This document shows positions 36,990-64,000 of a stretch of DNA of 64,000 bases, piece after piece. Positions within the stretch are counted from its first letter, which is position 1. Every line of letters starts with the position of its first letter. Origin of the DNA: Styela clava. Its lineage: Eukaryota. The notes under the pieces were generated by a model. The model was not told the origin of the DNA. It saw only the letters and a list, made by a program, of their open reading frames with translations, and made no database searches. The position numbers and the translations under genes are program-made. The stretch is taken from contig NC_135251.1 of NCBI RefSeq assembly GCF_964204865.1, forward strand, positions 9,176,001 to 9,240,000, in the 5' to 3' direction.

Positions 36990-39900
36990 TTAACCAAAAC
37001 AAAAATTAAATACCTCAAATACATTTCTAAGTCCCAAAGCAAATACAAGTACTACCAGTATCAGAAAATTACGACGTACTTTATTTTCTTCATTCACAAT
37101 TTTGATATTATCTTCAATCTCGTTGCTCAGGTTGTTTCGTTCTTGCTGCACAATTGCTGACATTTTTGTCTTCAATAGGTTTGTCTTTCGATCAAACATT
37201 TCCATTGCTGTTATTTTATGCTGATTACACAAGTTTTGAATTGTAGAATCATATCTTTGAGTATGCTGAAATATAAATATGGTATTACAAATAAAACACG
37301 GTATGTTAGTTACCATATATTGCTTAAGGCGGTATGTATCAAAATTACGAAAGAAGGCATACGATTAGATGTCATTGTTTAAAAACGTTCGCTATAACAT
37401 TATTTAATTAAAGTAGTACGATTTTTTTGGAATTTCAATTATTACTTAATGTGTCTGGGGGATAAGTGTTATGATTTTTTTGCCAATTTTTGCCAATTAG
37501 ATAATTAGTGAAACTTAACTGGCCCATTCAAGTCAGAAATGATTATAAGTGGTAAACATATAAAATATTTGATTTTTTTTTTTTTTCTACAGAATAAACA
37601 AATCAATGTATATTTTTAACTATGATATAGAATTTTCAGTGAGACTTGTCCTACTTACGTTTCGCATTTTGTTCACAAAAAGATTGTATGCTTCGCTTCT
37701 CGCTGTTTTAACTTGAGATTTGTTTGTCTCCTAATTTAAAAATAAAAATAAAAAAGAATTATAAAAAATACAAAGAGAAACCACATCTACCATCTATTTT
37801 TTATTTTATATAAGTTAGTTGTTTAATTTCTTTTATCCCATCATTAGTTTGTCAAAAGTAGAACAAATATTCACACACATGCTCTTGTTTCTCGAGTTGT
37901 ACTCTAGCTTGTTCTGTCTTGTTCTTACTCTTGAATATTGAAAACTTATTCTCTATTTCTTGTCCCAATTCCTCTTTATTATCCTTGGTGATACTGTTAC
38001 AAATAATTAGAAGCATACTGAAGTTATCTAGTAATTGGCCACTGCTAATGGAAAAATTTAATTGTATATTACCCAAGTATTATGCAAATGTGATATATCT
38101 AATATTGGAAGAAGTGAAAATGTTAGTTTCTATCGTCGATTGAAGCATGAATATCTTATCAGGAAAATTAGGAATGTGGAAATAAAGTTTTTGGTAAAAG
38201 TAGCAATAGAAATAATTCAGGATATGTTTAAAATGATAAAAAAATGAGGTAGACACGTTGAATTATAAATAATTTATTTTCTTACTGAATGACTCCCTAA
38301 ACTGATGGATCGCTGCCCACAATTGCAATTTTCCAAATGTATAAATTTTTTGGGCAAACCTGTGCTGCAGCTTATTAAGACATTTAAAGCATACTTGTCG
38401 CTGCCTGAAGCTCTTTCAAAGCTTGTAAAAGCATTCTCTTTGAGCGCTGTGTGCTTTTCCATGAGATTTGTGTCGCTCGGAGGTGAAGAGTATTGAGATA
38501 TATGCTGTAGAAAAACAGTTACACATCTTTAATAATGACAATCACTTAAATATTATTTGTTCATATCAGTAAAACTGAAATATTAAAACATAACAAATGT
38601 CAGAAAATGGTTTATGCAATAATATTACCAAAAACTGGTTTTTCATTAATAATTTTTTATAAGATTAATCAATTTAATGTTTAATTAACTCCAATGAACA
38701 TACTTACCATTTCCATGCTGTCGCAATAATCTCTCACTACTTTCTTTGTTTCCCTGCGTTTCTAAAAACACGTAATATCCTATCAGCAGATTTAACAACA
38801 ACAACAACAGTTGATAACGCAGGAGGAAAATTAGCCAATTTCACAAGATTTTTTAAACATTGAACAAATAGGAATATCTAAAAGTTATAAAGAAATTGAC
38901 TGAACAATGAGTTTAAAAAATATATCTTTTCGTATTTTTTGGCGAGTGACATAAGTAATTTCTGTGAATATAAATTCAGGTAATATCTCGTTTTATTTGC
39001 AATATTAACCAAGTCGCAACGTTATACATACGCTTAGACGAACGCATGTTTTCTTTTGCTTTTGAATTTCCAAAAGCACGCTATGCCTCGATATTGATTA
39101 TTGTTTGCAGCGATTAAGCAACACAAAGACAATCTATATTCACCTTTTTTTCAAAATCTGCATCCTCGTTGTTTTTATTTATTGTCTTGAATATTTCAAA
39201 TCTATTATCCATCAATGATACCAGTTTTTCGAGATCTTTTGCAGTGTCACAATTTCTGCACAAAACATACACAAGAAATATTAAACAACACAGAAATTGA
39301 GTAAATTTTAGTATAAATACCATTAAGCAGTGATCAATCTGGCCAAACGGAAAAGTCTTAATAAAGCTTGCAAGCTTGAGGATATTTTCATAAAATCTCC
39401 GATTTTTTTTTATCAGTGGCGTTGGGCTATCTGATGTGGTTCCTAACCGTTGTGGTCCGCAGACCGATGAAGCTCCAAAAGGTATTTATGCCGGTCCGCG
39501 AAGCTTTTAAGGCGGTCCTGTTGAAATATGTTGTTTTGCAGTTTATAGTCAACAGGCAACCGCTTGGTTACCGAAAAGAAAATCTTGCGGTGATTTATAA
39601 AAACTTTTGAACAGCGGTTAATCTTTTTCAATGCGCACTTAACTGCTTTTAAACGGCTTATTTTACCACATTAGCAACACTGGATTGATATCTGTTGTTT
39701 GAATTAGCAAGAAAGTCACACGAGTGGGCTTCGAGAAAAACGCTTAGCTAAACGTCTAGAATTCATCGTTTTATAAATACGACCGATTTCAGTAAAGCAT
39801 GACAGGACAATTTTTTTAGGAGGCTCTCGATTTGGAAGATATGCATATAAGTGGCTCGTTCTGTTGGATATTCCATACATTATTGCCTTTAGTCATTTAA

Positions 39901-42900
39901 TTTTAACCCTGCCATATTTAGATTTGTTCCCATTGTGTTTCGTAGACGTTATCAAATAATAAAAAAAATTAATCGTTGATAATAATAATACGGTATCAGT
40001 ATATATGTAAAGCAACCATAAAGAATTCAAACGTATTATACCCAATTTTATATTTTTATATACACCAGAATGAGAGCCAATTCAAGATGTTTACGAGGGT
40101 TTCATTCATGCCTTACCTTGTTCGTTGATATGAAACGCTTATATATATTATTAGCAATACCGAAGGCTACCCCCGTCAACGTGCATTGACGACGAAGGAA
40201 GTGGAGCAATCTGTATATTATACGATATGATACGAGTAAAAACAATAATAGCAAACTTGAATAAACAGCTAATTCAATTCTAGCATTCATCGACCATTGA
40301 ATAAAATAATTATCGAATAATCAAATCACCGATCCCTTTTTAAAAATTTAAATAAATATTAATTACTTCATAGCAGAGTTGCTGACGAATAGACCCACAA
40401 GCTGCTTTGTTGCTACTTATTGTGGCCTGTTATACTCGTATTATAATTATACGCATTTTGATGTCTATTGTGTTAATAATACCAAATTGTAAGTCACCCA
40501 ACGCGCCAATCATGACAAATATTTCCCTAAATATAATTTGGAATTACTCAGCAGCGGTTGTAGCTGTAGGGTATCGCTTTGTTGGGAATTCACACAAGAA
40601 TACGTTTGTATTCTTGAAAATAATTATTCAAAACCAGAACTTAATCCTTCTTTGGGCCTGTGTTTACTGACTAACAAATATTCTATTCACTAATTACCTG
40701 GTATTGCATCACAAATGAGAGCGATATTCAACGAGATTACACCGCAGCATCATTTCGCGGTAAAGAACAAATCATACGTCTCTAAAAATCTACGAGTAAA
40801 AGTGGCCCTAATGTTTGGTGAGTAATTTGATATTGAAAATGACAATCAAAATCGGAGTAGTTATTGCATAATTGATGGTAGAGTTGCCGTCATATTGCGT
40901 GTTTGATAAGTGTGATATAAATTTCCCCGACGGCGTCTTGGCGACGAGTAATCACAAATTTCGATGTCCCCGTTTTGATACGTCGCCCAAACCCGTTGTT
41001 GAATCTTGCGGGTGGCAAAAACAATAAGTACACTTGTTTTAGCCCACACCACCCCCTCAAAGCACGTCGTAACGCTACTCAACTTTTTGATTTTTTTAAT
41101 ACGTTTATATTTGATGGTTTTGAAAGTTAATCTAAATTGGATGAATTATTATCAGTAGCAAACCTTTAGACCACGGCATTGTTTTGAGACAAAATTACTA
41201 TCAGGAATGAGTTTATCATTTTTGAGATTATTTTTTCCACAAATTAAATAAGAAGACAAAATTTATTGTATTTTCATTTCATCATAAGTGAGTGCAATTA
41301 GAGTTTCAAAGATTTTGCGCAGAACATCAATTATTCTTCGCAAAAAAGTTTTCTCTTTTGAGAAGTGACGTAATTCCGGACATTGTTCCAAGCCATTGTA
41401 TGGAATCACCAAAACTCTAAATTTGTGACTTAGAGCCCTTAATTCCTTTTAAATATTTTTCACGACTCCCTAGTTCTAGCATTGTGCATCTAGGTACCAC
41501 CATTAACATATACAGTGTCTCGTACTAAGGAATTTCAGAATCATGAAACTTTACAAAATCTACTCGTTTATATATAATTGTGACGCAACTACCGCCTCTC
41601 GTCGAACACTGGTTGTAGCTTCAATATCACCAACCTATATTTCTCCATATTGTTTGCCAACAATGGCTGTTATTGACTATAGAGCGGGGGTTCTCAAACG
41701 GAGACCGGTGGCCCCTAAAGGGGGCCACGAAGCAGTTCAAGGGGGGCTTCGGCACAAGGCTAGTCCCGTTCAGGCGTTCACCGCAGTTTTATTACCTGAA
41801 TAGATTATTTGTGATCACAGGGTGTATTCTGTTTCTGAATTGTTTGATCATAAGGGAATACCAATCAAAATAGTTCACGGGTAGGCAGTCTAACCTGCAG
41901 ATGGACGATTTCGCTAGACTGCGAGACAATCTTCAGAATCGTATTATAGACGCACAAATCCAAATGTAAAGTCCTAATGCCCAAAATACGAAAATGAAAC
42001 TACGGTTATGTTGATTTTAAATAAGTAAATCGAGATGAGAGAGAATTACTTGCATTGCTCGTATGTAATGAGCAATGAATCATTACGTCCATCTAAACTC
42101 CAAAACCACCGCGACAAACATCGCCCCCAGCAGGTAGAAGGCATTGACATCAGTTTCATGGTTGTCAAGCGAGTTAGATTTAGAGGAAACTAGATCCAGA
42201 AACCGTCTTGATGTTGACAGAGAAATTTGTCAGGCTATATCAAAGGGGGTGCCTAATATAAGAAACGTCGTCAGTTGGTCCCAAGTGCAAGATTTCCAAT
42301 GATTATATTTTTAAAAAGCTTCAACTCTTTTTGTCTGTAGTACTATTCAACACGTGTATTTTTTGGAATGGCGAACGGGGGCCACGAGTGCAAAAAGGTT
42401 GGGAACCACTGCCTTGTTCAAAGCATAAGCGAGGATAAGTCGTATAAAAATAGTTCATTCACCACTCACATGCTTGAACAAAGCTCCTTGAATTTGTCTT
42501 TAGCCATCTTTTGAAATTTTGAGTTTTCTGCTTGTAGATTATCGCAGCTTGCACCATTGATTAAAAGCTAAATTATTTTATAATGAATGAAACAGTGTGA
42601 TTCATAACTATTACTTGTTGTCGCACTTTATTTCAGCAAACGAACCTTGTACAAGAGAACATGGCGAAACAACATAGCTCTCAAAAAGGTATTGTAAAAA
42701 TAATTGCTGTTTTTTTTATATTTTACTGTTGCCATGTAACAATATTTAGGTCTGTAAAATACTACAGATTCATTATTTTTCCATTTCTCTAAAAAAACAA
42801 TTTACAATAAATATTTTTAGAAATTATCGTCTAATTTTTCAAATGTCTTTGATTAAACACATGTTGAAACTCAATGAGTCAAGAGGAGGGCAGCTTTGTT

Positions 42901-45900
42901 AAAAAGTAAATAGTAAACAGCCAAGAAGTTAAATGACTGAATTTATACTTTCGTATTGATATGGATTACCTTGTTCATTTCCGTTTCATAAATATCTAAT
43001 GCTTCCTGAACAAATTGACCAGATATCATTGTCTGCAAATAAATAAACAATGTTTATTCACTATTTTTGTTTGTTTTTGAAAATCCTGATCGAAAAAATA
43101 TACGATGACAGAAATAAGGGAGTATGCCATTGTTTGTAACAAAATTTCAATTGTTACTTTGCAAAATTATCGAATATGTACTGAACTAATTGTTGAATGT
43201 GAATTTTAATCCTTGGAGGAACACAAGTATTTTTTCTATCTGCATAAAAATATGATCTCATATTCTCGAGACAATGAGATCATTGATATTCCTGCGAAAT
43301 CTATGCCATTCCAATTTATTTTACAATATATGTACAATACATTTGACCTTAATTACTGCGCCGATGGTATAAACCGGCAATAATATTAATCTTGCTCAAC
43401 TAAAATTTATCTTATCAAAAACGAAACGAACCAGTTCTTGATTGGTCAAAAATATACCATCTTGCCAAAAAAGTAATAAATAAAGATAAGGATTTATCTA
43501 CAAAACGGAGAAATCCCAAACGCCTTTAAATAGATAACTTAACCCATAGTGAAGGAGAAAAAAGGAGACGAAACAACACGCAACAATAATATAATGATAT
43601 TGATTGATAAAAAATGAGCTAGATGTATGACATCGTTCAATGAAGGATGTGCCATGGTTGTTTGCTACAAATTTTAGTAAGTGTGTACTAGTGTATTCTT
43701 AGTGTATCAGATTTCACTCAATGAATGAATTTTTGAAATTGTAAATTTCCTACCTCCCTCATTTCTTGCAAATGTATGTTATTGTCATTGCTCTGCTTGT
43801 AAATGCTATTGAATCTCTCTTCCATTTTATTATTCAATTTTTGTCTGTACTCTTGCACATTCTCAGATGGAAGACTTGGATTTCTGAAACAGTATTTAAA
43901 GAGCCCGAATGTTACTAATACTAATAATAAATATATTATTGATTGATTATAATTAGTTTTTGAACCCTCAATTGGCAACAATAACCCTCGAGTTGAAGGT
44001 TGTTTTCTACAAATTTTTAGGTATTAGATCGCATATCTAAATTACGAGTGGAGACGTGCCCTATAGCATCCTATCGTTGAATACGCTGAATAGAACTTTA
44101 GCATACGATTTTATAAATCTATGAGTGATTTTTTTGAGCTTATTGGTTGACGATGAAAAACTAATTTTAAAGTGACAATACAGAATTGAATGAGTAAACT
44201 CGGCTTTGTAGAGTTCAGAATATAACATCACAAATTAAGCCATTGAAATATCTCAAAATATCATTTACTGGCAGTGGTAACTTTATCGGAATGACTTAAT
44301 TAAAAACATTCTTCAATTTTTTTTCATTTTTTTGCCCCAAATTTCCTTGCATTCTGTAGAAAATAGCATACGTCATCTACACCTATTTAATCTCACATAT
44401 TCGCAATTAATCCATTGAAGTCTTTTGCAGCTTTTTCTCTGTATTCGTTATGTTTTTGGATGAAATCATTATTTTTCTCCCATTTATCATCTGAAGTAAT
44501 CTGAGATGAAATCATAGGTAAAAGTTTATGGAAAAATTCAAATAACAATCATTTATTAAAAAAAATGTGTTGACACTTACTTGGAAAAGTTTTTTATCAA
44601 ATGAATTGAATAACAACTACAAACAAACACTATCGAAATTTTTTACTCAATACAATTTCATCTATTGCATTATTATTTTGCCAATATCAAGATTCGGATT
44701 CTATTAATAGAACCAAAATCAACATTTTTGGGGCCTAGAACAGTACACTTAGTGGCCAATTAAATCTTTCTCTCAATATCTAGGTCCTCGCATCTGGAAC
44801 ATATACATTGTTAGCAATTACTGAAATGAACAGGACAGCTAGCGGGGGTAAAGAGCGCGACAGTGAGATTTTAAATTTACAGTATAAGGCAGATATTATG
44901 TTGAATAATACGACTACAGTTCTGTCTTTGACTTTTTCCGAAATTAAACTATTATAACTGGTCTTGATCTTTGTTTAAATTACCTGTCTCATCAGTTGAT
45001 CATATTCATTCACTGCATTTTCAACGTGTTGTTCATATTTCAATCCTAAATCTCTCTGAAAAAAATTAAATAGGTCATTATTAAGTTTTACTTCTAAAAA
45101 ACCGGTTATATCGGATTTCGATCTGTCAACAACAAAAATATAAATACAACGAGAGGATTGAAATTGCATCCGGGCATGTAACAATTAATTTTGGCTCAAT
45201 TTTACTTTATGTTTATCACCCTATTGTCGATAATATCTGCATTACTACTAGAGCTGGGAAAAATACTCGAATAACGAATAAAAACTCGAATAACGGATAG
45301 CAAATCGAATATTAAAATATTCGAATATCCGGTACTACATGACCTGCGCCGCTTTTCTTGGACACGAACTCGCGCGTTTATAAATCAGTCGTGAATTGCA
45401 AGAATTCATCTAGCGTTCACTGACAGACCAAAACAGACACATATGAGAAGTCGTTGTCTTTGCGTTATGGAGTTTTTTTATTTTATTTTACGTATAACGT
45501 ATCGTTTCATTCCCTATTTTGCAAAAAACGTACCGAAAATTCCGTAAGTTAAGAAGCGTAAAACCAGATGAGGTATTTTAATCAAATTTACTAGATTTCA
45601 AACCTCCTATGCCCGGTGATATGTAATTAACCGTTTCTTGCATGACCGGGACATTAAATTTATTAAATTGGGATTTAAAATGACGTTTCGAGAGATTATA
45701 CATTGGAAAAGGCGATTTTATGTCATCAGAAAATCAGAGTTATATAAATAGCATCGATTTCAAAATGACCAGACAAGGTTTTTTTTTTTAAAAGCTGGTA
45801 TTAGTTACATGAGTGTGAAAAACACTTATTGAGTTGTAACCGGATAAGAAAAGACAAACCATGCTCCCTTCAATGTACTTTCTATCAGCTCTGCAAAGGT

Positions 45901-48900
45901 CCTTCCATCCTTGAACAAGTAATGTTTCGATATTTCGAAAATGTGAACATCTTACTCAACCATGCATGGTTGGTGGAGTGTTAAAATTGTAAACAAGAGC
46001 AGAACGTAAAACAATTACGTTGTAACAACGTACACTGGCACATTTACGAAATGTCGCATCTATTTTTATTGAATATGATTGCATTCGTTGTATTTTAAAG
46101 CATTATAGTGGTGTCAGCCGTGACATTATCAATATCGTCAAGTGAAGTATGAAATTTGCAAACTCTTTAAACAAAATTATGAATTACTCCGTAATGATTT
46201 TAGCTATAATAACCGTTGGGGTATTGTTTTGTTGAAAAAAGAATGTTAAAACTTGAGGGAATTATTTATACATACCGTATGACCCATGAAATGTATCTGT
46301 AAAAACCAAAATGAATTTCCTAATTTTCAATACCTTGTTGTTTTCATTCACACGCTTTACATTTTCTGTAAAGTACTGTTCCATGTTTGTAGACAATTTT
46401 TCACGAGTATTTTTCACTGTAGCATAATCATCATATTTCGCTATTTCTGTATCATACTCTTCCAAGCATTTTTCGTACTCGGTCTTTCGAAGACTTTCAA
46501 TGTCCATGCAGTATTCGTCTCCATACTAAAAAATGTGTGATAAATGTTATATATCTTCGTTAAACATATTAATTTGAAGATTTAGAGATGTCCCTGCGCT
46601 TGTGAGTTGATCATTATATTTTTATTTGCAGCACTAAGCATAACACTTACCTGGGAAAACGCTTCTTGAAACTTGGTCATAACTTCACTCGCTTCTTGAT
46701 TAATTCCCAGTTTATCCATATGCTGAAAAATATTAGGACATTCATGTTAAAATCGACACCGATAGTAAAAGTGCCCCCCGTGCGGTTGAATTGGGTAATT
46801 ATGTTGATTCAATTTTATTCACTATTTTTTTTGAGGGGGGGGGGGGGTTTCTAAATGAGGATTTTTGATGACAGAGGTACGGGAGTATGCCATCGTTATA
46901 GTTACCCGTCTAACCTCACAAATATAATAATGATATATGAGATCGTTCAATGAATGATGTGCCATTCAATATTGATTGTTTGCTACAAAATTATGATACA
47001 CAACAAGTGTATTTCTTCAAATTTTACTCAATGAATAAATTTTTAAATTAAAAATGTTCTACCTCTTTCACTTCTTGTAAATGTATGTTATTGTCATTGC
47101 TCTGCTTGTGAATGCTATTGAATCTCTCTTCCATTTTTTTATCCAATTTTTGTCTGTACTCTTGCACATCCTCGTGTGGCAGACTTGGACTTCTGAAACA
47201 GTATTTAAAGAGCCCGAATGTTACTAATACAAATAATAAATATAATATTGATGAATTATAATTAGTCTTTAACCCTTTTTTGGCAACAATAACACTTGAG
47301 TAAAAGGTTGTTTTCTACAAATTTTAGGGCATTGGGTCGCATATCTAAATTAAGAGTGGAGACGTGCCCTTTAGCATCACCTCGTTGAATACGCTGAATG
47401 GAACTTTAGCATACGATTTTATAAAGCTATGAGTGACGTTTTAGGGCTTATTGGTTGACAATGAAAAACTAATTGTAAAGTGACAATACGAAATTGAATT
47501 AGTACACTCGGCTTTGTAGAGTTCAAAACATAACATCACAAATTAAACATCTGGAATATCTCGCCCATTTACTGCCAGCGGCAACTATATCGGGATGACT
47601 AATTTAAAAACATTTTTCTATTTTTTATTTTTATGACCAAAATATTCTTGCATTCTGCTAAAAATACTATATGTGTCTACATCCATTCAATCTTACATAT
47701 TCGCAATTAATCTATTGAAGTCTTCCGCAGCTTTTTCTCTGTATTCGTTATGTTTTTGAATGAAATCAATATTTTTCTCCCATTTACCATCTGAAGTAAT
47801 CTAAAATAAAATCATATGTAATAATTTATCGAAAAATTCAAATAAAAATCATTTATTAAAAAAAATGTGTTGACACTTACTTGGAAAAGTTTAATGAAAA
47901 AAACCTAAAGAATCCAATGAATTGAATAACGAACAAAGAGAATAACAACTACAAACAAAAACTCTCGAAATTTTTTTATTCAATACAATTTCATCTATTG
48001 AAATATTATTTTGCCAATATCAAAATTCAGATTCTATTAATAGAACCAAACTCAACATTTTTGGGGCCTATAGAACAGTTCACTTAGTGACCAATTAAAT
48101 CTTTCTTTCAATATCTAGGTCCTCGCATCTGGAACAAATACATTGTTAGCAATTACTGAAATGAACGGGACAGCTAGCGGGGGTAAAGGGCGCGACAGTG
48201 AGATTTTAAATTTACAGTTTAATGCAGATATTATGTTGAATAATACGATTACAGTTCTGTCTTTGCCTTTTTCCGAAATTAAACTATCATAACTGGTTTT
48301 GATTTTTGTTTAAATTACCTGTCTCATCATTTGATCATATTCATCCACTGCATTTTCAACGTGTTGTTCATATTTCAATCCTAAATCTCTCTGAAAAAAA
48401 TTGAATAGGTCATTATTCGATTTTACTTCTGATAAACCGGTTATATCGGACTTCGATCTGTCAACAAAAAAATATATAAAAAATACAACGAGAAGATTGA
48501 AATTGCATCCGGGCTTATCACAATTAATTTTGGCTCAATTTTACTTTATGTTTATCACCCTATGGTCGATAATATCTGCATTCACTCGGTAAATTTTATT
48601 GTCATTTTAGGGGTAAAAAATTAAAGAATCGTGTCGGTAAACCGATTCACCGACTAAAGTCGGTAATATTCACCGATATTGGAGGCGTGGCGTTAGTCGA
48701 TGTTGCGCGCGAACTATGGTAAAGGAGAGCAGCCAATCAGACGATACATTTCAAACGAGGAAATTATTACGCGCGATTTTTTGTTGCTTTACTCCAGTGT
48801 TTCCCAACCCGAGTCCGCGGTCTCAAATGAGTCCGCGGAGCGTTTGAATGAGTCCGCAACGAACCAGAAATTCAGCCACTTTGCGATTTACGTTAGAATG

Positions 48901-51900: not shown

Positions 51901-54900
51901 CTTGTTACCTATAAAATAGTCTGTGATTTTACTGTTCTTGTCCTGTAAAGTGTAAAAAAGCCAGGATATTTACGGTAATTTTTACCAGGTTCTGAATATA
52001 AATTCACCGAATTTGAAATGTAAATTCACAGGTTAGCGCCGGTAAATATTACTGCGTATTGCCGGTGAAAATTACCGGAAAAAAATGTAAGAATTACTAG
52101 GTGTACCCTGTAAAATTCACAGATGATCTACAGCATTTTTACCGAAAATTCGAGTAATTTTTACCCTAAAATCATATTAAAATTTCACAACTATATTCCT
52201 GAATATATAATGCAAGGCGATTGCCGGTAAATATTTCTTAGAGTGCTGGCAAAATTACTCGAATAACGAATAGCAACTCGAATAACGGATAGCAAATCGA
52301 ATATAAAAATATTCGAATATCCGGTATTACATGACCTGCGCCGTTTTCTTGGACACGAACTCGCGCGTCTTTGAATCAGTCGTGAATTGCAAGAATTCAC
52401 CCAGCGTTCGCTGCCAGACCAAAACAGACACATATGAGAAGTCGTTGTCTTTGCGTTATGGGTTTTTATTTTTTTATTTTACGTATAACTTATCGTTTCA
52501 TTCCGTATTTTGCAAAAAAACGAACCGAACATTCCGTGAATTAAGAAGCGTAAAACCAGATGAGTTATTTTAATTAAATTTACTGGATTTCAAACCTCCT
52601 ATGCCCGGTGATATGTAATTAACCGTTTCTTGCATGACCGGAACATTAAATTTATTAAATTGGGATTTAAAATGACGTTTTGATCGATTATACATTGGAA
52701 AAGGCGATTTTATATCATCAGAAAATTAGAGTTATATAAATAGCATCGATTTCAAAATGACCAGTCAAAGTTTTTTCAAAAGCTGGTATTAGTTACATGA
52801 GTGTGAAAAACACTTATTGAGTTGTAACCGGATAGGAAATGACAAGCCATGCTCCCTTCAATGTACTTTCTATAAGCTCTGCAAAGGTCCTTCCATCCTT
52901 GACCAAGAAATGTTTCGATATTTCGAAAATGTGAACATCTTACTCAACCATGCATGGTTGAGTGGGAGTGTTAAAATTGTAAACAAGAGCAGAACGTAAA
53001 ACAATTACGTTGTAATAACGTATACACTGGCTCATTTACGAAATGTCGCACCTATTTTTATTGAATATGATTGCATTCGTTGTATTTTAAAGCATTATAG
53101 TAGTGTCAGCCGTGACTTTATCAACATCGTCAAGAGAAGTATGAAATTTGCAAACTCTTTAAACAAAATTGTGAATTACTCGGTAATGATTTTAGCTATA
53201 ATAACCGTTGGGGTATTGTTTTGTTGAAAATGTATCTGTAAAAACCAAAATGAATTTCCTAATTTTCAATACCTTGTTGTTTTCATTCACACGCTTTACA
53301 TTTTCTGTAAAGTACTGTTCCATGTTTGTAGACAATTTTTCACGAGTATTTTTCACTGTAGCATAATCATCATATTTCGCTATTTCTGTATCATACTCTT
53401 CCAAGCATTTTTCGTACTCGCTCTTTCGAAGACTTTCAATGTCCATGCAGTATTCGTCTCCATACTAAAAAAGTGTGATAAATGTTATATATCTTCGTTA
53501 AACCTATTAACTTGAGGATTTAGAGATGTCCCTGCGCTTGTGAGTTAATCATTATATTTTTATTTGCAGCACTAAGCATAACACTTACCTGAGAAAACGC
53601 TTCTTGAAACTTGGTCATAACTTGACTCGCTTCTTGATTAATTCCAAGTTTATCCATTTGCTGGAAAATATTAGGACATTCATGTTAAAATCGACACCGT
53701 TAGTAAAAGTGCCCCTATGCGGTTGAATTGTGTAATTATGTTGATTCATTTTTTTTCACTATTTTTTTTTTTTTTTAAATCCTAAATGAGGATTTTTGAT
53801 GACAGAGGTACAGGAGTATGCCATTGTTATAGTTACCCGTCTTACGTCACGAATATAATAATGATATATGACATCGTTCAATGAATGATGTGCCATTCAA
53901 TATTGATTGTTTGCAACAAAATTATGATACACAACTAATGAATTTCTTCAAATTTAACTCAATGAATAAATTTTTAAATTAAAAATGTTCTACCTCCTTC
54001 ACTTCTTGTAAATGTATGTTATTGTCATTGCTTTGCTTGTGAATGCTATTGAATCTCTCTTCCATTTTATTATCCAATTTTTGTCTGTACTCTTGCACAT
54101 CCTCAGATGGAAGACTTGGACTTCTGAAACAGTATTTAAAGAGCCCGAATGTTACTAATACTAATAATAAATATAATATTGATTGATTATAATTAGTCTT
54201 TAACCCTTTATTGGCAACAATAACACTTGAGTAAAAGGTTGTTTTCTACAAATTTTAGGGCATTAGGTCGCATATCTAAATTAGGAGTGGAGACGTGCCC
54301 TTTAGCATCACCTCGTTGAATACGCTGAATGGAACTTTAGCATACGATTTTATAAAGCTATGAGTGACGTTTTAGGGCTTATTGGTTGACGATGAAAAAC
54401 TAATTGTAAAGTGACAATACGAAATTGAATTAGTACACTCGGCTTTGTAGAGTTCAAAACATAACATCACAAATTAAACATCTGGAATATCTCGCCCATT
54501 TACTGCCAGCGGCAACTATATCGGGATGACTAATTTAAAAACATTTTTCTATTTTTTATTTTTATGACCAAAATATTCTTGCATTCTGCTAAAAATACTA
54601 TATGTTGTCTACATCCATTTAATCTCACAAATTTGTAATTAATCTATTGAAGTCCTCCGCAGCTTTTTTTCTGTATTCGTCATGTTTTTGAATGAAATCA
54701 ATATTTTTCCCCCATTTACCATCTGAAGTAATCTAAAATAAAATCACATGTAATAGTTTATTAAAAAGTTCAAATAAGAATCATTTATTGTAAAAGATGA
54801 GTTGACACTTACTTGGAAAAGTTTTTTTTATGAATATTTGAATAACGAACGACCCGAATAACAACTACAAACAAACTCTATCGAAACTTTTATCTCAATA

Positions 54901-57900
54901 CAATTTCATCTATTAAATTATTATTTTTTCCAATATTAAGATTCAGATTCTTTTGATACAATCAAACTCAACATTTTTGAGGTCTAGAACAGTTCACCTA
55001 GTGGCCAATTAAATCTTTCTTACAATATCTAGGTCCTCGAATCTGGAACATATAGATTGTTAGCAATTACTGAAATGAACGGGACAGCTAGCGGGGGTAA
55101 AGAGCGCATCAGTAAGATTTTGAACTTACAGCATAATGCAGATATTAAGTTGAATATTACGACTACAGTTCTGTCTTTACCTATTTCCAAAATTTAACTA
55201 TCATAACTGGTTTGATCTTTGTTTAAGTTACCTGTTTCATCAGCCGATCGTATTCATTCACTGTATTTTCAACGTGTTGTTCATATTTCAATCCTAAATG
55301 TCTCTGAATCAAATTAAATAGAATATAACTCAATTATACTTCCAATAAACCAGTTGTATCAAACTTTGGGCTGTCAACAAGAATAATATAAGTACAAAGA
55401 AAGGGTTGAAATTGCTGAAAATTCACCCTCAGCGTTCGCGAACAGACCAAAACAGACACATTTGAGAAGTCGTTGTCTTTGGGTTATGGTGATTTTTTAT
55501 TATTTTATTTGACGTATAACGAATCGTTTCATTCCCTATTTTGCAAATAACGCACGGACCATTTCGTAAATTTAGAAACGTCAAACCAAATAAGGTATTT
55601 TAAATAAAAATTTACCTGATTTTAAATCTCGTATGCCCGGTGACATGTAATTAAAAAAATAAAATTATTTTTTCTGTATCATAGATAGCAATTTTCCGTA
55701 GCATGTAATGCTTTTTAGACCCCCAAGACTGCTAAAACACGCGTATTCCAGCGTTCGATCGGACCCGCGACCTGTTTTGATCTAACTTGACAAATAAAAA
55801 TTTCAGCCCCCCCCCCCCTCTTTGAAAATTTCTGGATACGCCCCATGAACAAGTAATGATTCGAAAATGTAAACATCCTACTCAACCATGCATGGCCGGT
55901 AGAATGTTAAAATTGTAAACAAGAGTAGAACGTAAAACAATTACGTTCTAACAACGTACACTGGCTCTTTACGAAATGCCGCGCCTATTTTTATAGAATA
56001 TGATTGCATTCGTTGTATTTTAAAGCATTATAGTAGTGTCAGTGGAGATATTATCAACATCGTCAAGTGAAGTATGAAATTTGCAAACTCTTTAAACAAA
56101 ATTGTGAATTACTCGGTAATGGTTTTAGCTATAATAACCGTTGGGGTATTGTTTGTTGAAAATTTTTTTTTAAAACTTGAGTGAGTTAGTTATACATAAC
56201 GTATGACCCATGATATGTATCTGTGAAAACAAATATGAATTTCTTAATTTTCAATACCTTGTTGTTTTCATTCACACGCTTTACATTTTCCGTAAAGTAC
56301 TGTTCCATGTTTGTAGACAATTTTTCACGAGTATTTTTCACTGTAGCATAATCATCATATTTTGCTATTTCTGCATCAAACTGTTCCAAGCATTTTTTGT
56401 ACTCGGTCTTTCGAAGACTTTCAATGTCCATGCAGTATTCGTCTTCATACTTGAAAAAAATATGATAAATGTTATTTTTATCTTCGCTAAACCTATTAAT
56501 TTGGGGATTTCGAGATGTCCCTGCGCTTGTGAGTTGATCATTATATTTTTATTTGCAGCATTAAGCATAACACTTACCTGGGAAAACGCTTCTTGAAACT
56601 TGGTCATAACTTCACTCGCTTCTTGATTAATTCCCAGTTTATCCATTTGCTGAAAAATATTAGGACATTCATGTTAAAATCGACACCGATAGTAAAAGTG
56701 CCCCTGTGCGGTTGAATTGGGTAATTATGTTGATTCATTTTCATTCAGTGTTTCTGTTTGTTTTTGGAATTTCTAAATGAGGAAATATACGATGACATAA
56801 GTGCAGGAGTATGCAATTGTTATAGTTACCCGTCTTATGTCACAATTATACTAATGATATATGACATCGTTCAATAAATGATGTGCCATTCAATATTGAT
56901 TGTTTGCTACAAAATTATGATACACAATTAGTGTATTTCTTTGAATTTTACCCAGTGGATAAATTTTTAAATAAAAAATGTTCTACCTCCTTCACTTCTT
57001 GTAAATGTCTGTTATTGTCATTGCTTTGCTTGTGAATGCCGTTGAATCTCTTTTTAATTTTATCATCTAATTTTTGTCTGTACTCTTGCACATCCTCGTG
57101 AGGAAGACTTGGATTTCTGAATCAGTATTTGAAGTTGTACAAAAATGAACAAGTATTTAGGCAATGACGTTTCATAAGTAAACGCAGGTATATATAATTC
57201 AGCTTTGGTTGAGCGTAGATTTATCAGATTAAAACTAAAGGATCCGTATTTAAAGGTGTTTGTTTATTAATGTATGATTTCAATTTGAATGGTTAATAAA
57301 AGCTATTATCTTATAAGTATATCCTTATCGTACACGTTTGTAGTTAACACAAACAAGTAAACAAATTAGCATCGTCAGAAACTGTCCGGAATATAAATAG
57401 CATCGAAGTGTTGAACTTTGAAAGCTGGTATGAATCACTTAATAATAACAAATAAATAAAATTAATAATAATTAAATGACAGCCGTGAATTCTTATAAAT
57501 GAGTTTAAGTTTGCTTAGAATGTATTTTTAGTAATCCACCACATCCTTTGCACAATATTGTTTTTAAAAATGTGAATATTTTTCTCCACCATGCATGGCG
57601 GAGGTCGCTTTGCTGCGCCTAATATAGTCGGCAATTCTTTTCAAAGTTTTTATGCATAAATATTTAGGGCGTGAAGTCATGAAATCGTTAAGTGAAGTGT
57701 TGATTTTGCAAATTCCGTAAATACAATTAAGAATGTCTCGGTAACTATTGAAGCTACAAAATTGGTCGTGGTGTTATTTTATTGAAAAATAACGGAAGAA
57801 AACGATAAACATAATATCAATTAGCAATAATTAGTGCTTAACCCTCCGCTAAACACAACAACCCTAAAGTACAAAATTGCTTTCTACAAATTTTTGGTCA

Positions 57901-60900
57901 TTGGGACGCATATCGCAAATAAGATTGGGAACGCGCTCTTTGGCGCCATCTCGCGGAATAGAACTTTAGTATACGCCCTAAAAAGTTAACAAAATTATTT
58001 TTTACTGCCATTTTTATTTCCCAAATAGATTTCATTGCATTCTGATAAAGATACGATATCTTGTCCACAACCATTAAACTTACATATTTGCAATTAATCT
58101 ATTGAAGCCTTTCGCAGCTTCTTCCTTGTATCCTTTATGTTTGCGTATGAAGTCATTATTCATTTCCCATTTACCATCTGAAGTAATCTGAAATACATCA
58201 AATGTTATAGTTCACAAAAAATTTCAAATGAAAAAAAAACTGCTCACAAGATTTTCATCAGTTTTAGGCATCTTTGATACATAAATCTCGAGTTTAATGT
58301 GATATTTCTATTCGAATATATCATAAGAAAATAATCATAATTAATAGAAAGGTTGAGTTCACACTAACATACAATTTTTTTTTAAACAAATAATGAACAA
58401 CACGAATAATAAATACAAACAAACACTATCAAATTTCCATCTTCGTCTTTTTTTTTTTTTTTCTATTAAAATTTTGTACAAATAACAAATTTTCAATTCG
58501 AAGGTTATTCAACCAAGATTTTAAAAATTTCAATATATTCAGAATATATTGATGCAGCCACACTTAACCTAGAACAATTCATGTATCAGCCAATTAATTT
58601 TTATTACATATCTGTTACCTTGTTACCAATTCTTAAAAACTAGACTGGGGGTGGAAGTAGAGAGCGCGACAGGACGATTTCAAAGCATGATGCAAATATT
58701 ATTTTGGAAAATACGACTCTGTGTGTGACATTTTTTCTTTTTAAAAGTGACCATTCATATCTGAATCTGTGTTTAAATTACCTGTTTCATCAGTCGATCA
58801 TATTCATTCACTGCTATTTCAACGTGTTGTTCATATTTCAATCCTAAGTCTCTCTAGAAAAAATAAAATAGGTTATAATTCAGTTATATTTACAATAAAC
58901 TATTTTTATCAAACTTTGTTCTGTCAACAACAATAAATATAAAATTAACAAAAATGTTGAAATTACATCCAGGCATATCACACTTAATTTTAGTAGCAAT
59001 AATACTTTATGTTCATCACCAGAATGTTGATAATATATGCAATACTACACAAATTCACAAATTTCAAAACAGATTGCAAACAGCTTAGATACACTCTAAT
59101 ATTAAAACGAGAAAATTGGTCGGAGACCGAAGACTTATCGATCCAAACTGCGGTTTCGATTCATGACCTTATAGTGACACTGCGTGTCCCATCACTAATT
59201 AATTGATAACTCGCTAATTATACGACATAATTTATCTAAAATCAATAGGTTTCTGGTCCGAGATATGATGAATGCACATGCAAATTTGAAGCAGATTCAA
59301 CCACGCCTCCGTGAGATATCGCGTGCATCTAACATACAGACAAACAGATAGACAAACAGACAGACAAACAGACAGACAGACAAACAGACAAACAGACAAA
59401 CAGACAAACAGACAAACAGACAAACAGACAAACAGACAAACAGACAAACAGACAAACAGACAAACAGACAAACAGACAAACAGACGAACAGACGAACAGA
59501 CGAACAGACGAACAGACGAACAGACGAACAGACGAACAGACGAACAGACGAACAGACGAACAGACGAACAGACGAACAGACGAACAGACGAACAGACGAA
59601 CAGACGAACAGACGAACAGACGAACAGACGAACAGACGAACAGACGAACAGACGAACAGACGAACAGACGAACAGACAAACAGAGAGACAATCACTATCC
59701 CTACTTTCGATTGTAGCACCAATGATTAATGATGCTGTTTTTACTACTGAAGGGTAATTTTCATTTTAATTATTAAAAGGAAAGTATCTATATTTTCGCA
59801 GAAACATTTTGATTTTTCTTGTAGTTTTACTCCTTATATTAAAAAGGCAACGGGCCACAAGAATTTCGGCGTAATGAGAATGGGCCACGAAAGAAGTACG
59901 TTTGAGAAGCACTGGATTGAACAATATGTCTGAAACAGGAAAGTGATATACGATGGTTCAAATTAGGGTAAAGTAATAGATTCAGATTGAGGTTCAGATA
60001 ATTTATTTGTATATTTGTGTTTCTTTACGTTAAAATTAATTTGAAAACTCAAACATAATCGAAATTTACAATGAGATTTTAAAAATGACATGTATGTAGA
60101 AAAACAAATATTAATTTCCTAATTTTCAATACCTTGTTGTTTTCATTAAAACGCTTCACATGATCTGTAAAGTACTGTTCCATGTTTCTAGACAATTTTT
60201 CACGAGTATTTTTCACTGTAGCAACGTCATCATATTTCCTGGTTAGTGAATCATACTGTCTCAAGCCTTTTTTGTACTCGGTCTTTTGAAGATTTTCAAT
60301 GTCCATGCAGTATTCGTTTGCATACTTGAAAAAATATAAAATATTTCAAAAATTTAGGATTTAGAGATTTGTCTACGTTTGTTAATTATTTCTTTTTCGA
60401 TTTTTTTTAGTATTTTTTTAGAATTTTTGAAGCACCAAGCAAAACACTTACCTGAGAAAACGTTTCTTGAAACTTGGACAAAACGTCACTTGCTTTTTCG
60501 TTGATACTAAGTTTATCAATTCGCTGAAAAATATGGAGACATGTATGTTAATGTATTTTCAACAAATATGTAACTATGATGTATTGTAAATATGTGATTC
60601 GATTAAAAATCATCAATCTTTTTCAAAGGTGATGCCGAGTTTGCGCAAATATATACTTGTGCAATTTAGTTACACATTTTCACCCACGCCGATAGTAAAA
60701 TGCCCCAATGCGGCGGAGTCGAGTTATTAGGTTAATCCATGCTGACAAGATTCGAGCTAGAATAAATTGATATTTTAATAATGCATCATACCTTTTCCAA
60801 TTCTTTCTTTTCTTCCGCGTATAATCTTCTCTTTTCAAATATTTTGTAATTAGTAGATAAACGTTGTTCTAAAGCTTTCCGTTTGTTTTTGATCACACTC

Positions 60901-62405
60901 GGCATCACTCGTAGCCAGTCTTTAGTTTGCCTATCAAATTCCAGCAATATGGAATCACTCAATGTCTTGTTTATTCTTTCAAGATCCTTTTTCGAGAGTT
61001 TCGTGAGATCCTGAATTGAAAACTTACTTTATAGCACTGTTTATCCTTGATTAAAGGTTATTGGATAACACGACATTACTAATGAGTTATCAGATGGTGT
61101 TTATACCGCGTATTAAATGTATTATGCATTATTTTGTGTCACTCAGTGACAATAGATTAAAAATAACATCAAGAATATCATAAAATTTTAATTGGCAATC
61201 GCCATATTCGCTACTCACATGTTCTCCCATTGTTCCTATGTACTGAGTTACCATGGCGGATGATAAGTTATTGATTTCTTCTATTACTTTGGACTGTATT
61301 ACAACAGAAATTTTTTTATTCAAAATCAAATGATTTTAATCATCATTAATAAATAAATCTTGAAAAACCACTGATATTTATAAAAAGTATATTATTCTTT
61401 ATATTTGGGACTGTGAAATGAAATAAATAGAAATACCAAGGCTATGTATTGGCAGTCATTCAAGCGTATGTTTCCAATATTTTGGAAATACCCAATGTTT
61501 CTTTTTGACATTTTCTAACCAATTTGTTACAACTTGGGCGATCGGGTAGGTATGAATTTAAAACAAATTTCTCTTCCCAAACAATGTTTAACCCCAAGAT
61601 CGGGGCTTACGCTTTGACCAAAGTCTAAAGAAAAATCGAATCAAAGGTCGGTATTTGAAATCTAATCTTGGCAATATTGATTCAATAGAGAAACTGTCAA
61701 AAACATTCTGTTGTATTCCACTCAACTTACAGAAATGGTATGATAAATTGAAAAAAAAATTATTTTTTTTTCTATAAATTCATTTTAGAAACCATTCTAA
61801 ATATTACGCCTGATACAAGATAGAATAGAACAAAGTTTTTTGAATACGTATTCAGTTTCGGGTACGGTATCAACAATCATCATGTGAGCTCACAATGCCA
61901 CACGTGTTTTCAAAAGTAGATCTGTATGTTGTATTACCATAGTAAATATATAAAAAAACAATCAAAATAAAAAATTAAAAAATACATAACATAGTCGATT
62001 CACTAGAACCTTTTTTCTAAGATAAAAAAAGTAATGAAAATCGAATTTAGCACCTTTCTTGTTTCATTCTCCTGCTCCACAATTCTATAATAATCTTCAC
62101 ATTCTTTTATTGCATGTTGATGTGCTTTATCTCTGTCACTCTCTTCTCCCAATGTTGATATTTCATAAAATGTTATCGTGGCTTCGCCAACTGCATTATC
62201 GTGAAATTCACGGAGAACATCGGTGTCGGCAATTTCTTCGTGAACAATCTAAAAACGAGGTAACAGTTAACAATTGCATTACTATTTTTATATATTATTG
62301 GTTCCCAATTGGATTATCAGACATTTCTATTACCTCTGTCATCACTTCTTTGTATCTGCGTACAGCTCTTTGAACAGCTTCATCATTATTAGCTCGAACT
62401 GTGTT
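36990..62405 (-). CDS. Large multi-exon protein made of ~13 tandem atlastin/GBP-like three-helix-bundle repeats (putative GB1/RHD3-family large GTPase, C-terminal portion; 5' end beyond the window)
   Basis: 32 GT-AG exons, 3741 nt, one open frame (~1246 aa), listed 5' to 3'. Leading exons: 62334-62405, 62054-62248, 61219-61293, 60792-61010. Cassette 1: 60452-60523, 60133-60324, 58782-58853, 58084-58187, 56987-57116. Cassette 2: 56578-56649, 56258-56449, 55232-55303, 54629-54732, 53994-54123. Cassette 3: 53589-53660, 53273-53464, 48319-48390, 47697-47800, 47063-47192. Cassette 4: 46651-46722, 46334-46525, 44984-45055, 44397-44500, 43754-43883. Final exons: 42970-43032, 42470-42567, 39144-39255, 38708-38761, 38395-38504, 37879-37993, 37659-37730, 36990-37265. 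The first unit, NTVRANNDEAVQRAVRRYKEVMTE-IVHEEIADTDVLREFHDNAVGEATITFYEISTLG..ECEDYYRIVEQENE, resembles the helical domain that follows the atlastin/GBP GTPase (recalled pattern ANNxAAV..A..xY...M...L...H......A...F....MG). Confidence 0.8.
41685..42411 (+). mobile_element. hAT (Buster/Charlie-like) internal-deletion derivative with a BED-finger transposase remnant
   Basis: Termini c(g)ggggttctcaaac / ggttgggaaccactg, with subterminal gggggccacga at both ends. 42052-42126 encodes HCSYVMSNESLRPSKLQNHRDKHRP, like the Buster-type C..C..VLSNESMKPSKLKRH motif. The TSD is not preserved. Confidence 0.75.
48583..52245. mobile_element. ~3.66 kb insertion with CACTC...GAGTG termini and ggtaaa/ttacc-rich subterminal repeats (CACTA/CMC-like, non-autonomous), unique to one cassette intron
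   Basis: Absent at the paralogous site ~45243 (ctgcatt|actactagag|ctggg). The left end ggtaaattttattgtcattttaggggtaaaaaatt matches the reverse complement of 52135-52187. No intact transposase was recognised. Confidence 0.65.
48795..50053. mobile_element. Non-autonomous hAT element (1259 bp) nested in the CACTC element
   Basis: TIRs cagtgtttcccaacc / ggttgggaaacgctg, a perfect 8-bp TSD ctttactc (48787-48794 and 50054-50061), and repeated subterminal gtccgc motifs. Confidence 0.92.
59108..59715 (+). mobile_element. DINE-1/HINE-like interspersed element with an internal microsatellite
   Basis: The conserved core is shared with 371-535, 10709-10942 and 28684-28920, and is followed by a (CAGA)-based microsatellite. 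The family class is inferred from architecture only. Confidence 0.55.
59337..59690. repeat. Compound octamer microsatellite: (CAGACAAA)n then (CAGACGAA)24
   Basis: Read directly. The switch is at 59481 and CAGACGAA units run to 59672. It explains the spurious ORFs at 59232-59757. Confidence 0.97.
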
Positions 62406-62599
62406 CTGAAAGATTACAAATTTTGCAATATTTATAGTTTCATTTATTTGCTGAGTTTGAATTACATTACAGAAGTACTATGCACGACGTTATAAACACT
62501 TGATTACCTTTATGTATTAATTTGTATTGAAAAGATGACAGATAAAAACGACCATTCGGTTATAATAGAGTGTTGTTTGAATTTATTTATTTATTATTA

Positions 62600-64000
62600 T
62601 TGAAGATTTTCAATGTCCATGCAGTATTCGTTTGCATACTTGAAAAAATATAAAATGTTCCAAAAATTTAGGATTTAGAGATTTGTCTACGTTTGTTATT
62701 TATTTCTTTTTCGATTTTTTTTAGTATTTTTTTTAAATTTCTGAAGCACCAAGCAAAACACTTACCTGAGAAAACGTTTCTTGAAACTTGGACAAAACGT
62801 CACTTGCTTTTTCGTTGATATTAAGTTTATCAATTCGCTGAAAAATATGGAGACATGTATGTTAATGTATTTTCAACAAATATGTAACTATGATGTATTG
62901 TAAATATGTGATTCGATTAAAAATCATCAATCTTTTTCAAAGGTGATGCCGAGTTTGCGCAAATATATACTTGTGCAATTTAGTTACACATTTTCACCCA
63001 CGCCGATAGTAAAATGCCCCAATGCGGCGGAGTCGAGTAATTAGGTTAATCTATGCTGACAAGATTCGAGCTAGAATAAATTGATATTTTAATAACGCAT
63101 CATACCTTTTCCAATTCTTTCTTTTCTTCCGCGTATAATCTTCTCTTTTCAAATATTTTGTAATTAGTAGATAAACGTTGTTCTAAAGCTTTCCGTTTGT
63201 TTTTGATCACACTCGGCATCACTCGTATCCAGTCTTTAGTTTGCCTATCAAATTCCAGCACTATTGAATCACTCAATGTCTTGTTTATTCTTTCAAGATC
63301 CTTTTTCGAGAGTTTCGTGAGATCCTGAATTGAAAACTTACTTTATAGCAATGTTTATCCTTGATTAAAGGTTATTAGATAACACGACATTACTAATGAG
63401 TTATCAGATGGTGTTTATACCGCGTATTAAATGTATTATGCATTATTTTGTGTCACTCAGTGACAATAGATTAAAAATAACATCAAGAATATCATAAAAT
63501 TTTAATTGGCAATCGCCATATTCGCTACTCACATGTTCTCTCATTGTTTCTATGTACTGAGTTTCCGTGGCGGATGATAAGTTGTTGATTTCTTCTATTA
63601 CTTTGGAGTTGGACTGTATTACAACAGAAATTTTTTTATTCAAAATCAAATGATTTTAATCATCAATAATAAATAAATCTTGATAAACCACTGATATTTA
63701 TAAAAAGTATATTATTCTTTATATTTGTGACTGTGAAATGAAATAAATAGAAATACCAAGGCTATGTATTGGCAGTCATTCAAGCGTATGTTTCTAATAT
63801 TTTGGAAATACCCAATGTTTCTTTTTGACATTTTCTAACCAATTTGTTACAACTTGGGCGATCGGGTAGGTATGAATTTAAAACAAATTTCCCTTCCCAA
63901 ACAATGTTTAACCCCAAGATCGGGGCTTACGCTTTGACCAAAGTCTAAAGAAAAATCAAATCAAAGGTCGGTATTTGAAATCTAATCTTGGCAATATTGA
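62600..64000 (-). repeat. Recent tandem duplication of 60286-61680 (runs off the window end) carrying exon copies 63533-63613, 63106-63324, 62766-62837 and a truncated exon at 62600-62638
   Basis: Near-identical at an offset of 2314-2320 bp. The breakpoint falls inside the 192-nt exon, giving ..MDIENLQ TAA TAA TAA. Confidence 0.92.

Follow-up and report, generated by a model that had tools for sequence, protein, structure and literature searches.

The length of the stalk is thought to matter for membrane tethering, fusion and coating by atlastin, Sey1p and the GBPs. To our knowledge, the stalks described in this superfamily consist of one, two or four bundles only. The stalk of Sey1p is built from four serial three-helix bundles with a helix-sharing linkage, and fusion is abolished when this stalk is shortened (PMC4576867). 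GBP1's stalk opens with a pair of three-helix bundles (PMC4576867), and RNF112 and atlastin have one bundle each (PMC12012479). BmAtlastin-n of Bombyx mori is a non-canonical atlastin of 770 amino acids (aa) with an antiviral role (PMC4926086). Here we describe LOC120336938 of the chordate Styela clava, which is very probably an atlastin-type GTPase gene with a stalk of about 15 such bundles. Its 3′ 27 kb lie in the window analysed here, a stretch of 64,000 nucleotides from contig NC_135251.1 (C2:9176001-9240000 in the 377-Mb assembly used for genome-wide searches). An earlier sequence-only reading of this window had proposed a GB1/RHD3 GTPase whose stalk had been multiplied into a long spectrin-like rod.

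Gene model and relatives of the G domain

The AT-rich stretch 36990-64000 was inspected on the minus strand, which was read in three frames with AG and GT positions marked and with tblastn matches as a guide, and each exon was then checked singly. Past the window end the numbering is continued, so that coordinates above 64000 are window-equivalent. On the minus strand, 35 of the 43 exons of LOC120336938 fall within 36990-63613, and all 43 exon translations of our model were found exactly, and in the same order, in isoform X1 of that gene (P0028, XP_077966091.1), an "uncharacterized protein" of 1784 aa annotated on the same contig. A 1784-aa form is also present in an earlier RefSeq annotation (XP_039260671). 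The 43 exons, or 1784 codons, contain no stop and no frameshift and carry consensus splice dinucleotides throughout. This intact frame and the intact splice sites rule out a set of separate tandem pseudogene fragments. In searches the window gene was represented by the identical P0028 and by P0006 (99.3% identical), and exons were also searched singly.

The whole product consists of a G domain (residues 1-325), a stalk (residues 326-1755) and a hydrophobic tail of about 29 residues at the very end. The stalk comprises 15 repeats in tandem, each of 86-102 aa, and a single orphan helix. The exons inside the window encode residues 415-1784 (1370 aa), that is, 14 complete repeats, the orphan helix-1 exon and the C-terminal tail. 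The sequence-only reading had correctly joined these exons into a single repetitive open frame free of stops and frameshifts, while its counts of 32 exons, ~1246 aa and ~13 repeats of ~88-102 aa were too low: there are 35 exons, 1370 aa and 14 full repeats of 86-102 aa, besides an orphan helix-1 exon of 24 aa. The unit that it took as the first (RANNDEAV, 62396) is indeed atlastin-like, but it is a copy, here called R1′, of the true first repeat R1, which lies 370-721 bases past the window end.

The GTPase that had been predicted beyond 64000 was found there. Its G domain of 325 residues is encoded by six exons at 65125-67662, 1.1-3.7 kb past the window end, with the start codon at 67662, and the corresponding PF02263 exon matches on the minus strand (C2:9241674-9243623) adjoin the window on the gene's upstream side. 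A search of P0006 against solved structures with HMMER gave atlastin-3 with an E value of 1.5e-55 over residues 10-403 and atlastin-1 with 7e-51. The atlastin-3 alignment takes in the complete G domain and extends across R1 onto the three-helix bundle of atlastin. RNF112 was the sole other solved relative (E 3.7e-21), and none of the GBP chains among the solved structures reached E 0.001. Even a single G-domain exon retrieved atlastins only among solved structures (E 1e-8). In Pfam, PF02263 scored 153 bits on the relatives P0001 and P0002 (cut-off 21.1). The 13-repeat P0001 matched GBP with E 9e-45 and, at residues 297-433, a partial GBP_C, limited to positions 6-140 of the 297 in the profile; no other Pfam family was significant. 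Elsewhere in the genome, at C4 ~10.10 Mb, there is a gene for a canonical atlastin, whose switch-II exon is near human atlastin-3.

The catalytic motifs, for which the sequence-only reading had recommended a search, are preserved in part. Both the G1 P-loop GSYRTGKS and the G4 motif RDW are present in the window gene, but both it and its duplicate have YTQG instead of DTQG at G3 and HRNG instead of HTKG in switch I (sites 66601-66756 and 67194-67334). DTQG is found in all eight of the aligned paralogue exons. Where switch I is readable in a paralogue, its Thr is retained except in the 7-repeat P0002 forms, which have HRNG with DTQG kept. P0013 reads NTQG at G3, and both the 13-repeat P0001 and a further relative, gene C (P0008), have DTQG together with HTKG. 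With YTQG and HRNG, the GTPase of the window copy is probably catalytically inactive.

Pairing of the heads was modelled with ESMFold2. A homodimer of residues 1-420 with GTP and Mg reached an ipSAE of 0.76, compared with 0.24 for the best control. In calibration, scores at or above the mark were obtained for 21 of 30 true pairs and for none of 23 single chains. The runs agreed in at least 70% of contacts, with a partner predicted local distance difference test score (pLDDT) of at least 81. The predicted interface comprises residues 42-45 of the P-loop, 84-87, 121-127, 149-159 and 198-203, which fall in the P-loop, switch and G4 regions. The G domains are thus predicted to pair head to head across the nucleotide pocket. 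Since atlastin dimers have been solved, this prediction speaks for likeness and not for binding.

Fold of the stalk, C-terminal tail and spliced transcripts

The repeats share a common exon design. Helix-1 exons usually have 24 codons (range 18-27), are in phase 0 at both ends and close with the Y/F-x3-M/F motif noticed in the sequence-only reading. In the two-exon repeats (88-100 aa) helices 2 and 3 are encoded together by one exon of 64-73 codons, and in the three-exon repeats (91-102 aa) helix 2 and helix 3 occupy separate exons split in phase 2. All repeat exon borders are in phase 0 except this helix-2/helix-3 border, and the E5/E6 border of the G domain is in phase 1. All 15 repeats align in register with common hydrophobic positions. 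R1 is the canonical atlastin three-helix bundle, and the other repeats share the three-helix pattern, most of them with a helix-1 exon of their own, in phase 0 and of about 24 residues.

An AlphaFold2 model was inspected for P0003, the 859-aa isoform of the P0002 gene, which contains repeat types R1-R4 and R11-R13 (mean pLDDT 80.7). In all seven repeats, long helices (53-63 residues) and short ones (19-24 residues) follow each other in alternation. The paralogue P0009 (1103 aa, 32% identical) has the same helix pattern in about eight units, and its C-terminal end carries hydrophobic helices. Such an alternation of long and short helices implies that helix 3 of each unit would continue as helix 1 of the next, and the repeats are predicted to be chained three-helix bundles with a linkage of the Sey1p or spectrin type.

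Structural comparison with VIA-align against 48,161 chains matched R1 to residues 344-434 of atlastin-1 (Z 12.2, root-mean-square deviation (rmsd) 2.5 Å, 89 residues, 21% identity) and R2 to the three-helix middle domain of RNF112 (Z 13.2, rmsd 1.4 Å, 88 residues). Sey1p was matched with Z 10.3 over 308 residues, and two to three consecutive repeats were matched to spectrin repeats with Z 8.2-9.2. According to the tool's own note, Z values of 12-13 can be reached by helical bundles without kinship; therefore the fold is supported and the kinship of R2-R13 with R1 is only likely, resting on register, a largely shared exon design, position and predicted fold. Both the atlastin-like bundles and the spectrin-like rod of the sequence-only reading are thereby upheld as predictions, the latter as a resemblance to spectrin (Z 8-9) and not as kinship. 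Other searches of the stretch were uninformative: Pfam on ten single exons gave nothing meaningful, phmmer with one helix-2/3 exon against solved structures gave a chance match only, and tRNA and Rfam scans of 36-64 kb gave no matches.

The C-terminal tail (residues ~1755-1784) is encoded at 36993-37079 on the minus strand, where the last 29 residues contain the core FLILVVLVFALGL, and it is a predicted membrane anchor. Its 19-residue Kyte-Doolittle mean is 2.2-2.7 in the near-identical P0001, P0006 and P0007. It is the sole hydrophobic stretch of the protein and nothing follows it, so that the two transmembrane (TM) segments and amphipathic tail of atlastin are not found here. In the window copy the uninterrupted hydrophobic core measures 13 residues and is followed by Arg. 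The C terminus ends ...NFCFG, and there is no CaaX box. P0009, P0010, P0013 and P0015, which are encoded on other contigs and measure 730-1120 aa, also end in a C-terminal hydrophobic segment. With such ends in several distant paralogues, tail anchoring may be a family trait.

Evidence for transcription came from three RNA-like runs (X1, X2 and X3), which were compared together with the DNA run X9 with C2:9235900-9241890 (window-equivalent 59900-65890). The RNA-like contigs are confined to predicted exons, and their joints show CT..AC ends (GT..AG on the gene strand) at the predicted borders. The exception is the joint between the R3 helix-1 and helix-2/3 exons, which was placed 3 nt off with GA..TG ends. 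None of these splice joints was found in X9. Run X1 contains, with 0-1 mismatches, the joints E5-E6, E6-R1 helix 1, R1-R2 and R2 helix 1-helix 2/3, and it also contains the joints from R2 to the orphan helix and from the orphan helix to R1′ helix 1. The last joint is possible only if the 2.3-kb duplication described below exists and is transcribed.

Runs X2 and X3 contain a joint from R3 helix 1 to R2′ helix 2/3 and the chain R2-R3-R4. A contig of 1143 nt in these runs spans E5 to R3 with a single R1-R2 copy, and another of 1010 nt extends 469 nt further downstream. We assign these contigs to a 7-repeat relative and not to the window gene, since R4 in them has the YGQH of P0002 and a difference of ~10% is found in the G-domain exons. 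The transcripts of other individuals include a P0002-type gene whose 5′ half is like the window gene and whose 3′ half is like gene C (P0008). The X2 and X3 transcripts suggest recombinant gene arrangements between haplotypes. Separate transcription is ruled out by the spliced contigs for the 5′ part of the gene, within its first 6 kb, and the exons are also connected in the RefSeq models. Beyond the first 6 kb, the gene is backed by these models, by frames and splice sites that are intact, and by an excess of synonymous (dS) over nonsynonymous (dN) divergence. With the G domain, the predicted fold of the repeats and these joints, none of the outcomes that would have refuted the sequence-only reading was obtained.

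Exon blocks, gene copies and the family in Styela

Every exon of the window was placed on the same basis, namely an open frame, AG/GT borders and an exact match to P0028, and all lie on the minus strand. From the 5′ side, R2 (residues 415-514; 63106-63613) comes first, with a helix-1 exon at 63533-63613 and a helix-2/3 exon at 63106-63324 that are joined by record 1 of X1 with 0-1 mismatches. The orphan helix-1 exon (residues 515-538; 62766-62837), which is read by the same record with CT..AC ends, stands directly next to another helix-1 exon. This belongs to R1′ (residues 539-627; 62054-62405; exons 62334-62405 and 62054-62248), a 98% copy of the out-of-window R1. R2′ (residues 628-725; 60792-61293) has exons at 61219-61293 and 60792-61010, and R3 (residues 726-813; 60133-60523) has exons at 60452-60523 and 60133-60324, both covered by record 6 of X2 and record 11 of X3.

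Three-exon and two-exon repeats alternate from R4 to R10. R4 (residues 814-915; 56987-58853) has three exons at 58782-58853, ~58084-58187 and 56987-57116, and the first bases of its helix-1 exon appear in the loose ends of contigs from X2 and X3. It is followed by the two-exon R5 (residues 916-1003; 56258-56649; exons 56578-56649 and 56258-56449), the three-exon R6 (residues 1004-1105; 53994-55303; exons 55232-55303, ~54629-54732 and 53994-54123), the two-exon R7 (residues 1106-1193; 53273-53660; exons 53589-53660 and 53273-53464) and the three-exon R8 (residues 1194-1295; 47063-48390; exons 48319-48390, ~47697-47800 and 47063-47192). R9 (residues 1296-1383; 46334-46722) again has two exons, at 46651-46722 and 46334-46525, and R10 (residues 1384-1485; 43754-45055) has three, at 44984-45055, ~44397-44500 and 43754-43883. 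R11 (residues 1486-1576; 39144-43032) has exons at 42970-43032, ~42470-42567 and 39144-39255 and an intron of 3.2 kb, and R12 (residues 1577-1669; 37879-38761) has exons at 38708-38761, ~38395-38504 and 37879-37993. R13 and the C terminus (residues 1670-1784; 36990-37730) are encoded by a helix-1 exon at 37659-37730 and the last exon at 36993-37265, with the stop codon at 36990-36992. A microsatellite, (ACAGACGA) in about 40 units at 59360-59684 in the R3-R4 intron, is the source of long spurious open reading frames on both strands.

This order reflects duplications that are visible at the DNA level. Between 43.7 and 60.3 kb there are tandem units of 3.0-3.5 kb, and the 3.3-kb block occurs four times, each time with one 88-aa and one 102-aa repeat in five exons. 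One unit is stretched to 6.9 kb because of a 3.65-kb insertion of nested dispersed repeats in the R7-R8 intron (48650-52300), which has more than 100 genome-wide matches and is also present in the duplicate gene. Two further tandem units of 2.3 kb at 60.3-64.9 kb are 98% identical. The similarity of the tandem units extends through the introns, which are 75-98% identical, a likeness that greatly exceeds anything expected by chance. The 2.3-kb duplication copied R1, R2 and the R3 helix-1 exon, which explains why two helix-1 exons now follow each other. The stalk has grown by tandem duplication of exon blocks, and the 2.3-kb duplication is very recent.

A comparison of substitution rates between repeats, a check put forward by the sequence-only reading, was carried out on the 3.3-kb units. 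These differ by dS 0.09-0.30 and dN 0.04-0.13 (dN/dS 0.32-0.53), with an intron divergence of 0.02-0.27. In all six unit comparisons dN was smaller than dS, and dS was near the intron divergence. Judged from these rates, the units are recent duplications under moderate purifying selection.

Repeat number varies among the copies, with 7 in P0002 and P0008, 13 in P0001 (1571 aa), whose catalytic motifs are intact, and 15 in P0028 and P0006. P0002 and P0008 (~1100 aa) carry after their seven repeats a further helical stretch and an amphipathic-looking C-terminal end with no hydrophobic tail. Isoforms of 1381 and 1594 aa modelled in RefSeq lack exactly one 190-aa double repeat. The contig carries two copies of the gene itself, separated by 131.5 kb. 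The second copy, LOC120335724 (C2:9080565-9112477), shows 98.2-99.6% identity to the first along 32 kb; introns, transposon insertion and YTQG are all part of this match, and the two products differ in 12 residues. This duplicate may reflect either a recent duplication of the segment or a haplotype that was retained. A two-gene module, in which the long-stalk atlastin-like gene is followed by an upstream 580-aa "atlastin-2-like" gene (P0021, P0022), occurs three times in the same orientation at C2 ~9.00-9.02, 9.08-9.12 and 9.21-9.255 Mb.

The family is large: the genome contains no fewer than 106 exon matches to PF02263, and over 20 Styela proteins belong to it. A profile built from helix-2/3 exons and searched against 1.84 billion representatives retrieved two proteins only, both from Styela, and this search is therefore silent on such stalks in other tunicates. 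Two word-indexed homologue searches retrieved almost exclusively Styela proteins. The nearest protein-atlas cluster is an arthropod GB1/RHD3 group of ~750 aa.

Possible roles and comparison with known systems

We propose, tentatively and at somewhat less than even odds, that the product is a membrane-anchored rod with a pairing head, which would tether over long range or serve active paralogues as a partner. The tail would anchor the protein in an organelle membrane, with the remainder in the cytosol. If each bundle adds 4-5 nm, the rod would measure ~60-70 nm and would hold the G domain far from the membrane, where the head could pair with its counterpart in a different family member, located on a second membrane or on a compartment that contains a pathogen. 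Such pairing would yield a long-range tether or a coat. The repeat number would set the reach, and would be varied by exon-block duplication and in-frame exon skipping. With the switch-I Thr and the G3 Asp lost, the head is likelier to be a module for nucleotide binding or for pairing than a hydrolysing motor. It is a speculative and rather improbable extension of this proposal that 7, 13 or 15 units, with or without a 190-aa double unit, set the capture distance of an adjustable tail-anchored tether in which the 15-unit copies serve as non-hydrolysing partners of active paralogues. The whole reading, which blends the very probable gene identity and architecture with the more tentative mechanism, has in our estimate a probability of about 0.6.

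Several observations weigh against it. Apart from the Z values that unrelated bundles can reach, Foldseek with the whole 859-residue rod gave no match with E ≤0.001, and pairwise similarity between the repeat types beyond R1 is weak (z 0-6). The tail is short and bears an Arg in the window copy, and its role as a membrane anchor is a prediction. The loss of G2 and G3 residues in the window gene and its duplicate means that the head may not cycle, and the predicted dimer may be a recall of solved atlastin dimers. Two consecutive helix-1 exons should disturb one bundle. Direct RNA support is limited to the first 6 kb, R5-R13 resting on RefSeq models and sequence integrity, and dN/dS of 0.3-0.5 indicates moderate constraint only. 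Finally, profile, homologue and protein-atlas searches found no long-stalk relative outside Styela clava.

Some of these observations fit other explanations. The product might be a GBP-like immune effector, that is, a fast-evolving, lineage-specific defence GTPase whose rod serves as a coat or gives reach to pathogen compartments, with tethering as such not being its role. We regard this as doubtful, although the size of the family, the threefold tandem two-gene modules, the repeat number that varies among copies, the recombinant look of genes between assemblies and the failure of the searches to find long-stalk relatives outside this species all agree with it, and the antiviral BmAtlastin-n of the silkworm offers a precedent (PMC4926086). 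The missing CaaX box and a sequence closer to atlastin than to GBP argue against it, and it overlaps with our proposal without being exclusive of it. The missing G2 Thr and G3 Asp, shared by the window gene and its duplicate, would also be expected of a catalytically dead paralogue that is drifting to loss with little or no function, its phase-0 exon array inflated by neutral unequal crossing-over. The orphan helix inserted in frame, the transposon-laden intron and a dN/dS that is 0.3-0.5 and not below 0.2 point in the same direction. A drifting copy is nevertheless unlikely to have kept 1784 codons in 43 exons free of stops in an AT-rich genome, with every splice site intact and dN below dS in six of six unit comparisons. 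The gene is transcribed and spliced correctly, including the duplication-specific joint, and its 1784-aa form recurs in the earlier RefSeq annotation (XP_039260671). A stalk of serial bundles has also been preserved in the 32%-identical P0009.

The repeat count might also be in part an artefact of assembly, with the 2.3-kb duplication or the second gene arising from mis-joined haplotypes and the true gene having 13 repeats. The duplicate's identity of 98.2-99.6% over 32 kb with introns falls in a range that is also expected of alleles, P0001 has 13 repeats, and the RNA contigs of X2 and X3 carry one R1-R2 copy only. Those contigs, however, match the 7-repeat P0002-type gene (R4 YGQH) and not the window gene, while record 1 of X1 reads the junction of orphan helix and R1′ with 0-1 mismatches, and 1784-aa models exist in both the earlier RefSeq annotation and that of the present contig. 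We consider such an artefact very improbable.

The genes form a natural series in one chordate, from the canonical atlastin with one bundle to paralogues with ~7, 8, 13 and 15. As this series includes copies with and without catalytic residues and modelled isoforms that are one double unit apart, the contributions of stalk length and of GTP hydrolysis to tethering can be asked directly. It is also a clear case of protein elongation via phase-compatible exon-block duplication. In RefSeq these proteins go by names that say little or mislead, among them "sporulation-specific protein 15-like", "interaptin-like", "uveal autoantigen...-like" and "MLP1-like", which mask this tunicate expansion of the atlastin family. 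No relevant paper came up in literature searches that combined Styela, ascidians or tunicates with atlastin or GBP.

Among the closest known systems are the human atlastins. The Styela protein is like atlastin-1 and -3 (PDB 3QNU, 5VGR) in G-domain kinship, first bundle and predicted head-to-head G dimer, but it has 15 bundles instead of one and a terminal hydrophobic segment instead of a TM hairpin with an amphipathic tail, and its window copy lacks the switch-I Thr and the G3 Asp. BmAtlastin-n is likewise an atlastin paralogue with a G domain and no TM hairpin. Its middle region is a coiled coil, and it has no reported tail anchor and no described serial bundles. RNF112/ZNF179 (PDB 9JJU) shows the same order of a GB1/RHD3 G domain and a three-helix middle domain, but has an N-terminal RING and one bundle only. 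With GBP1 (PDB 1F5N) the Styela protein shares the Pfam GBP domain, part of GBP_C and a multigene family as in immune defence; it differs in the absence of the back-folding long helix and of CaaX and in its incomplete GBP_C domain.

The serial arrangement resembles that of Sey1p/RHD3 (PDB 5CA8), in which helix 3 continues as the next helix 1, as is predicted for the Styela protein. Sey1p differs in having four bundles, two TM segments and a PF05879 G domain, whereas the Styela protein, a member of the atlastin clade, has 15 bundles, and its exons are modular and duplicated. Spectrin (PDB 3EDV, 1U4Q, 3FB2) has three-helix units of ~90-100 residues with continuous helices between them, a layout also predicted here, but there is no Pfam PF00435 match and no sequence kinship, and the resemblance is one of design and not of membership. 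The sequence-only reading had regarded the architecture as uncharacterised. As Sey1p has four bundles and GBP1 two, the serial-bundle design is precedented and only its length is unmatched. What is new compared with these systems is a run of 15 bundles (7-15 within the subfamily), encoded by modular duplicated exons and closed by a terminal hydrophobic tail where atlastin has a TM hairpin, in an atlastin-clade protein from a chordate.

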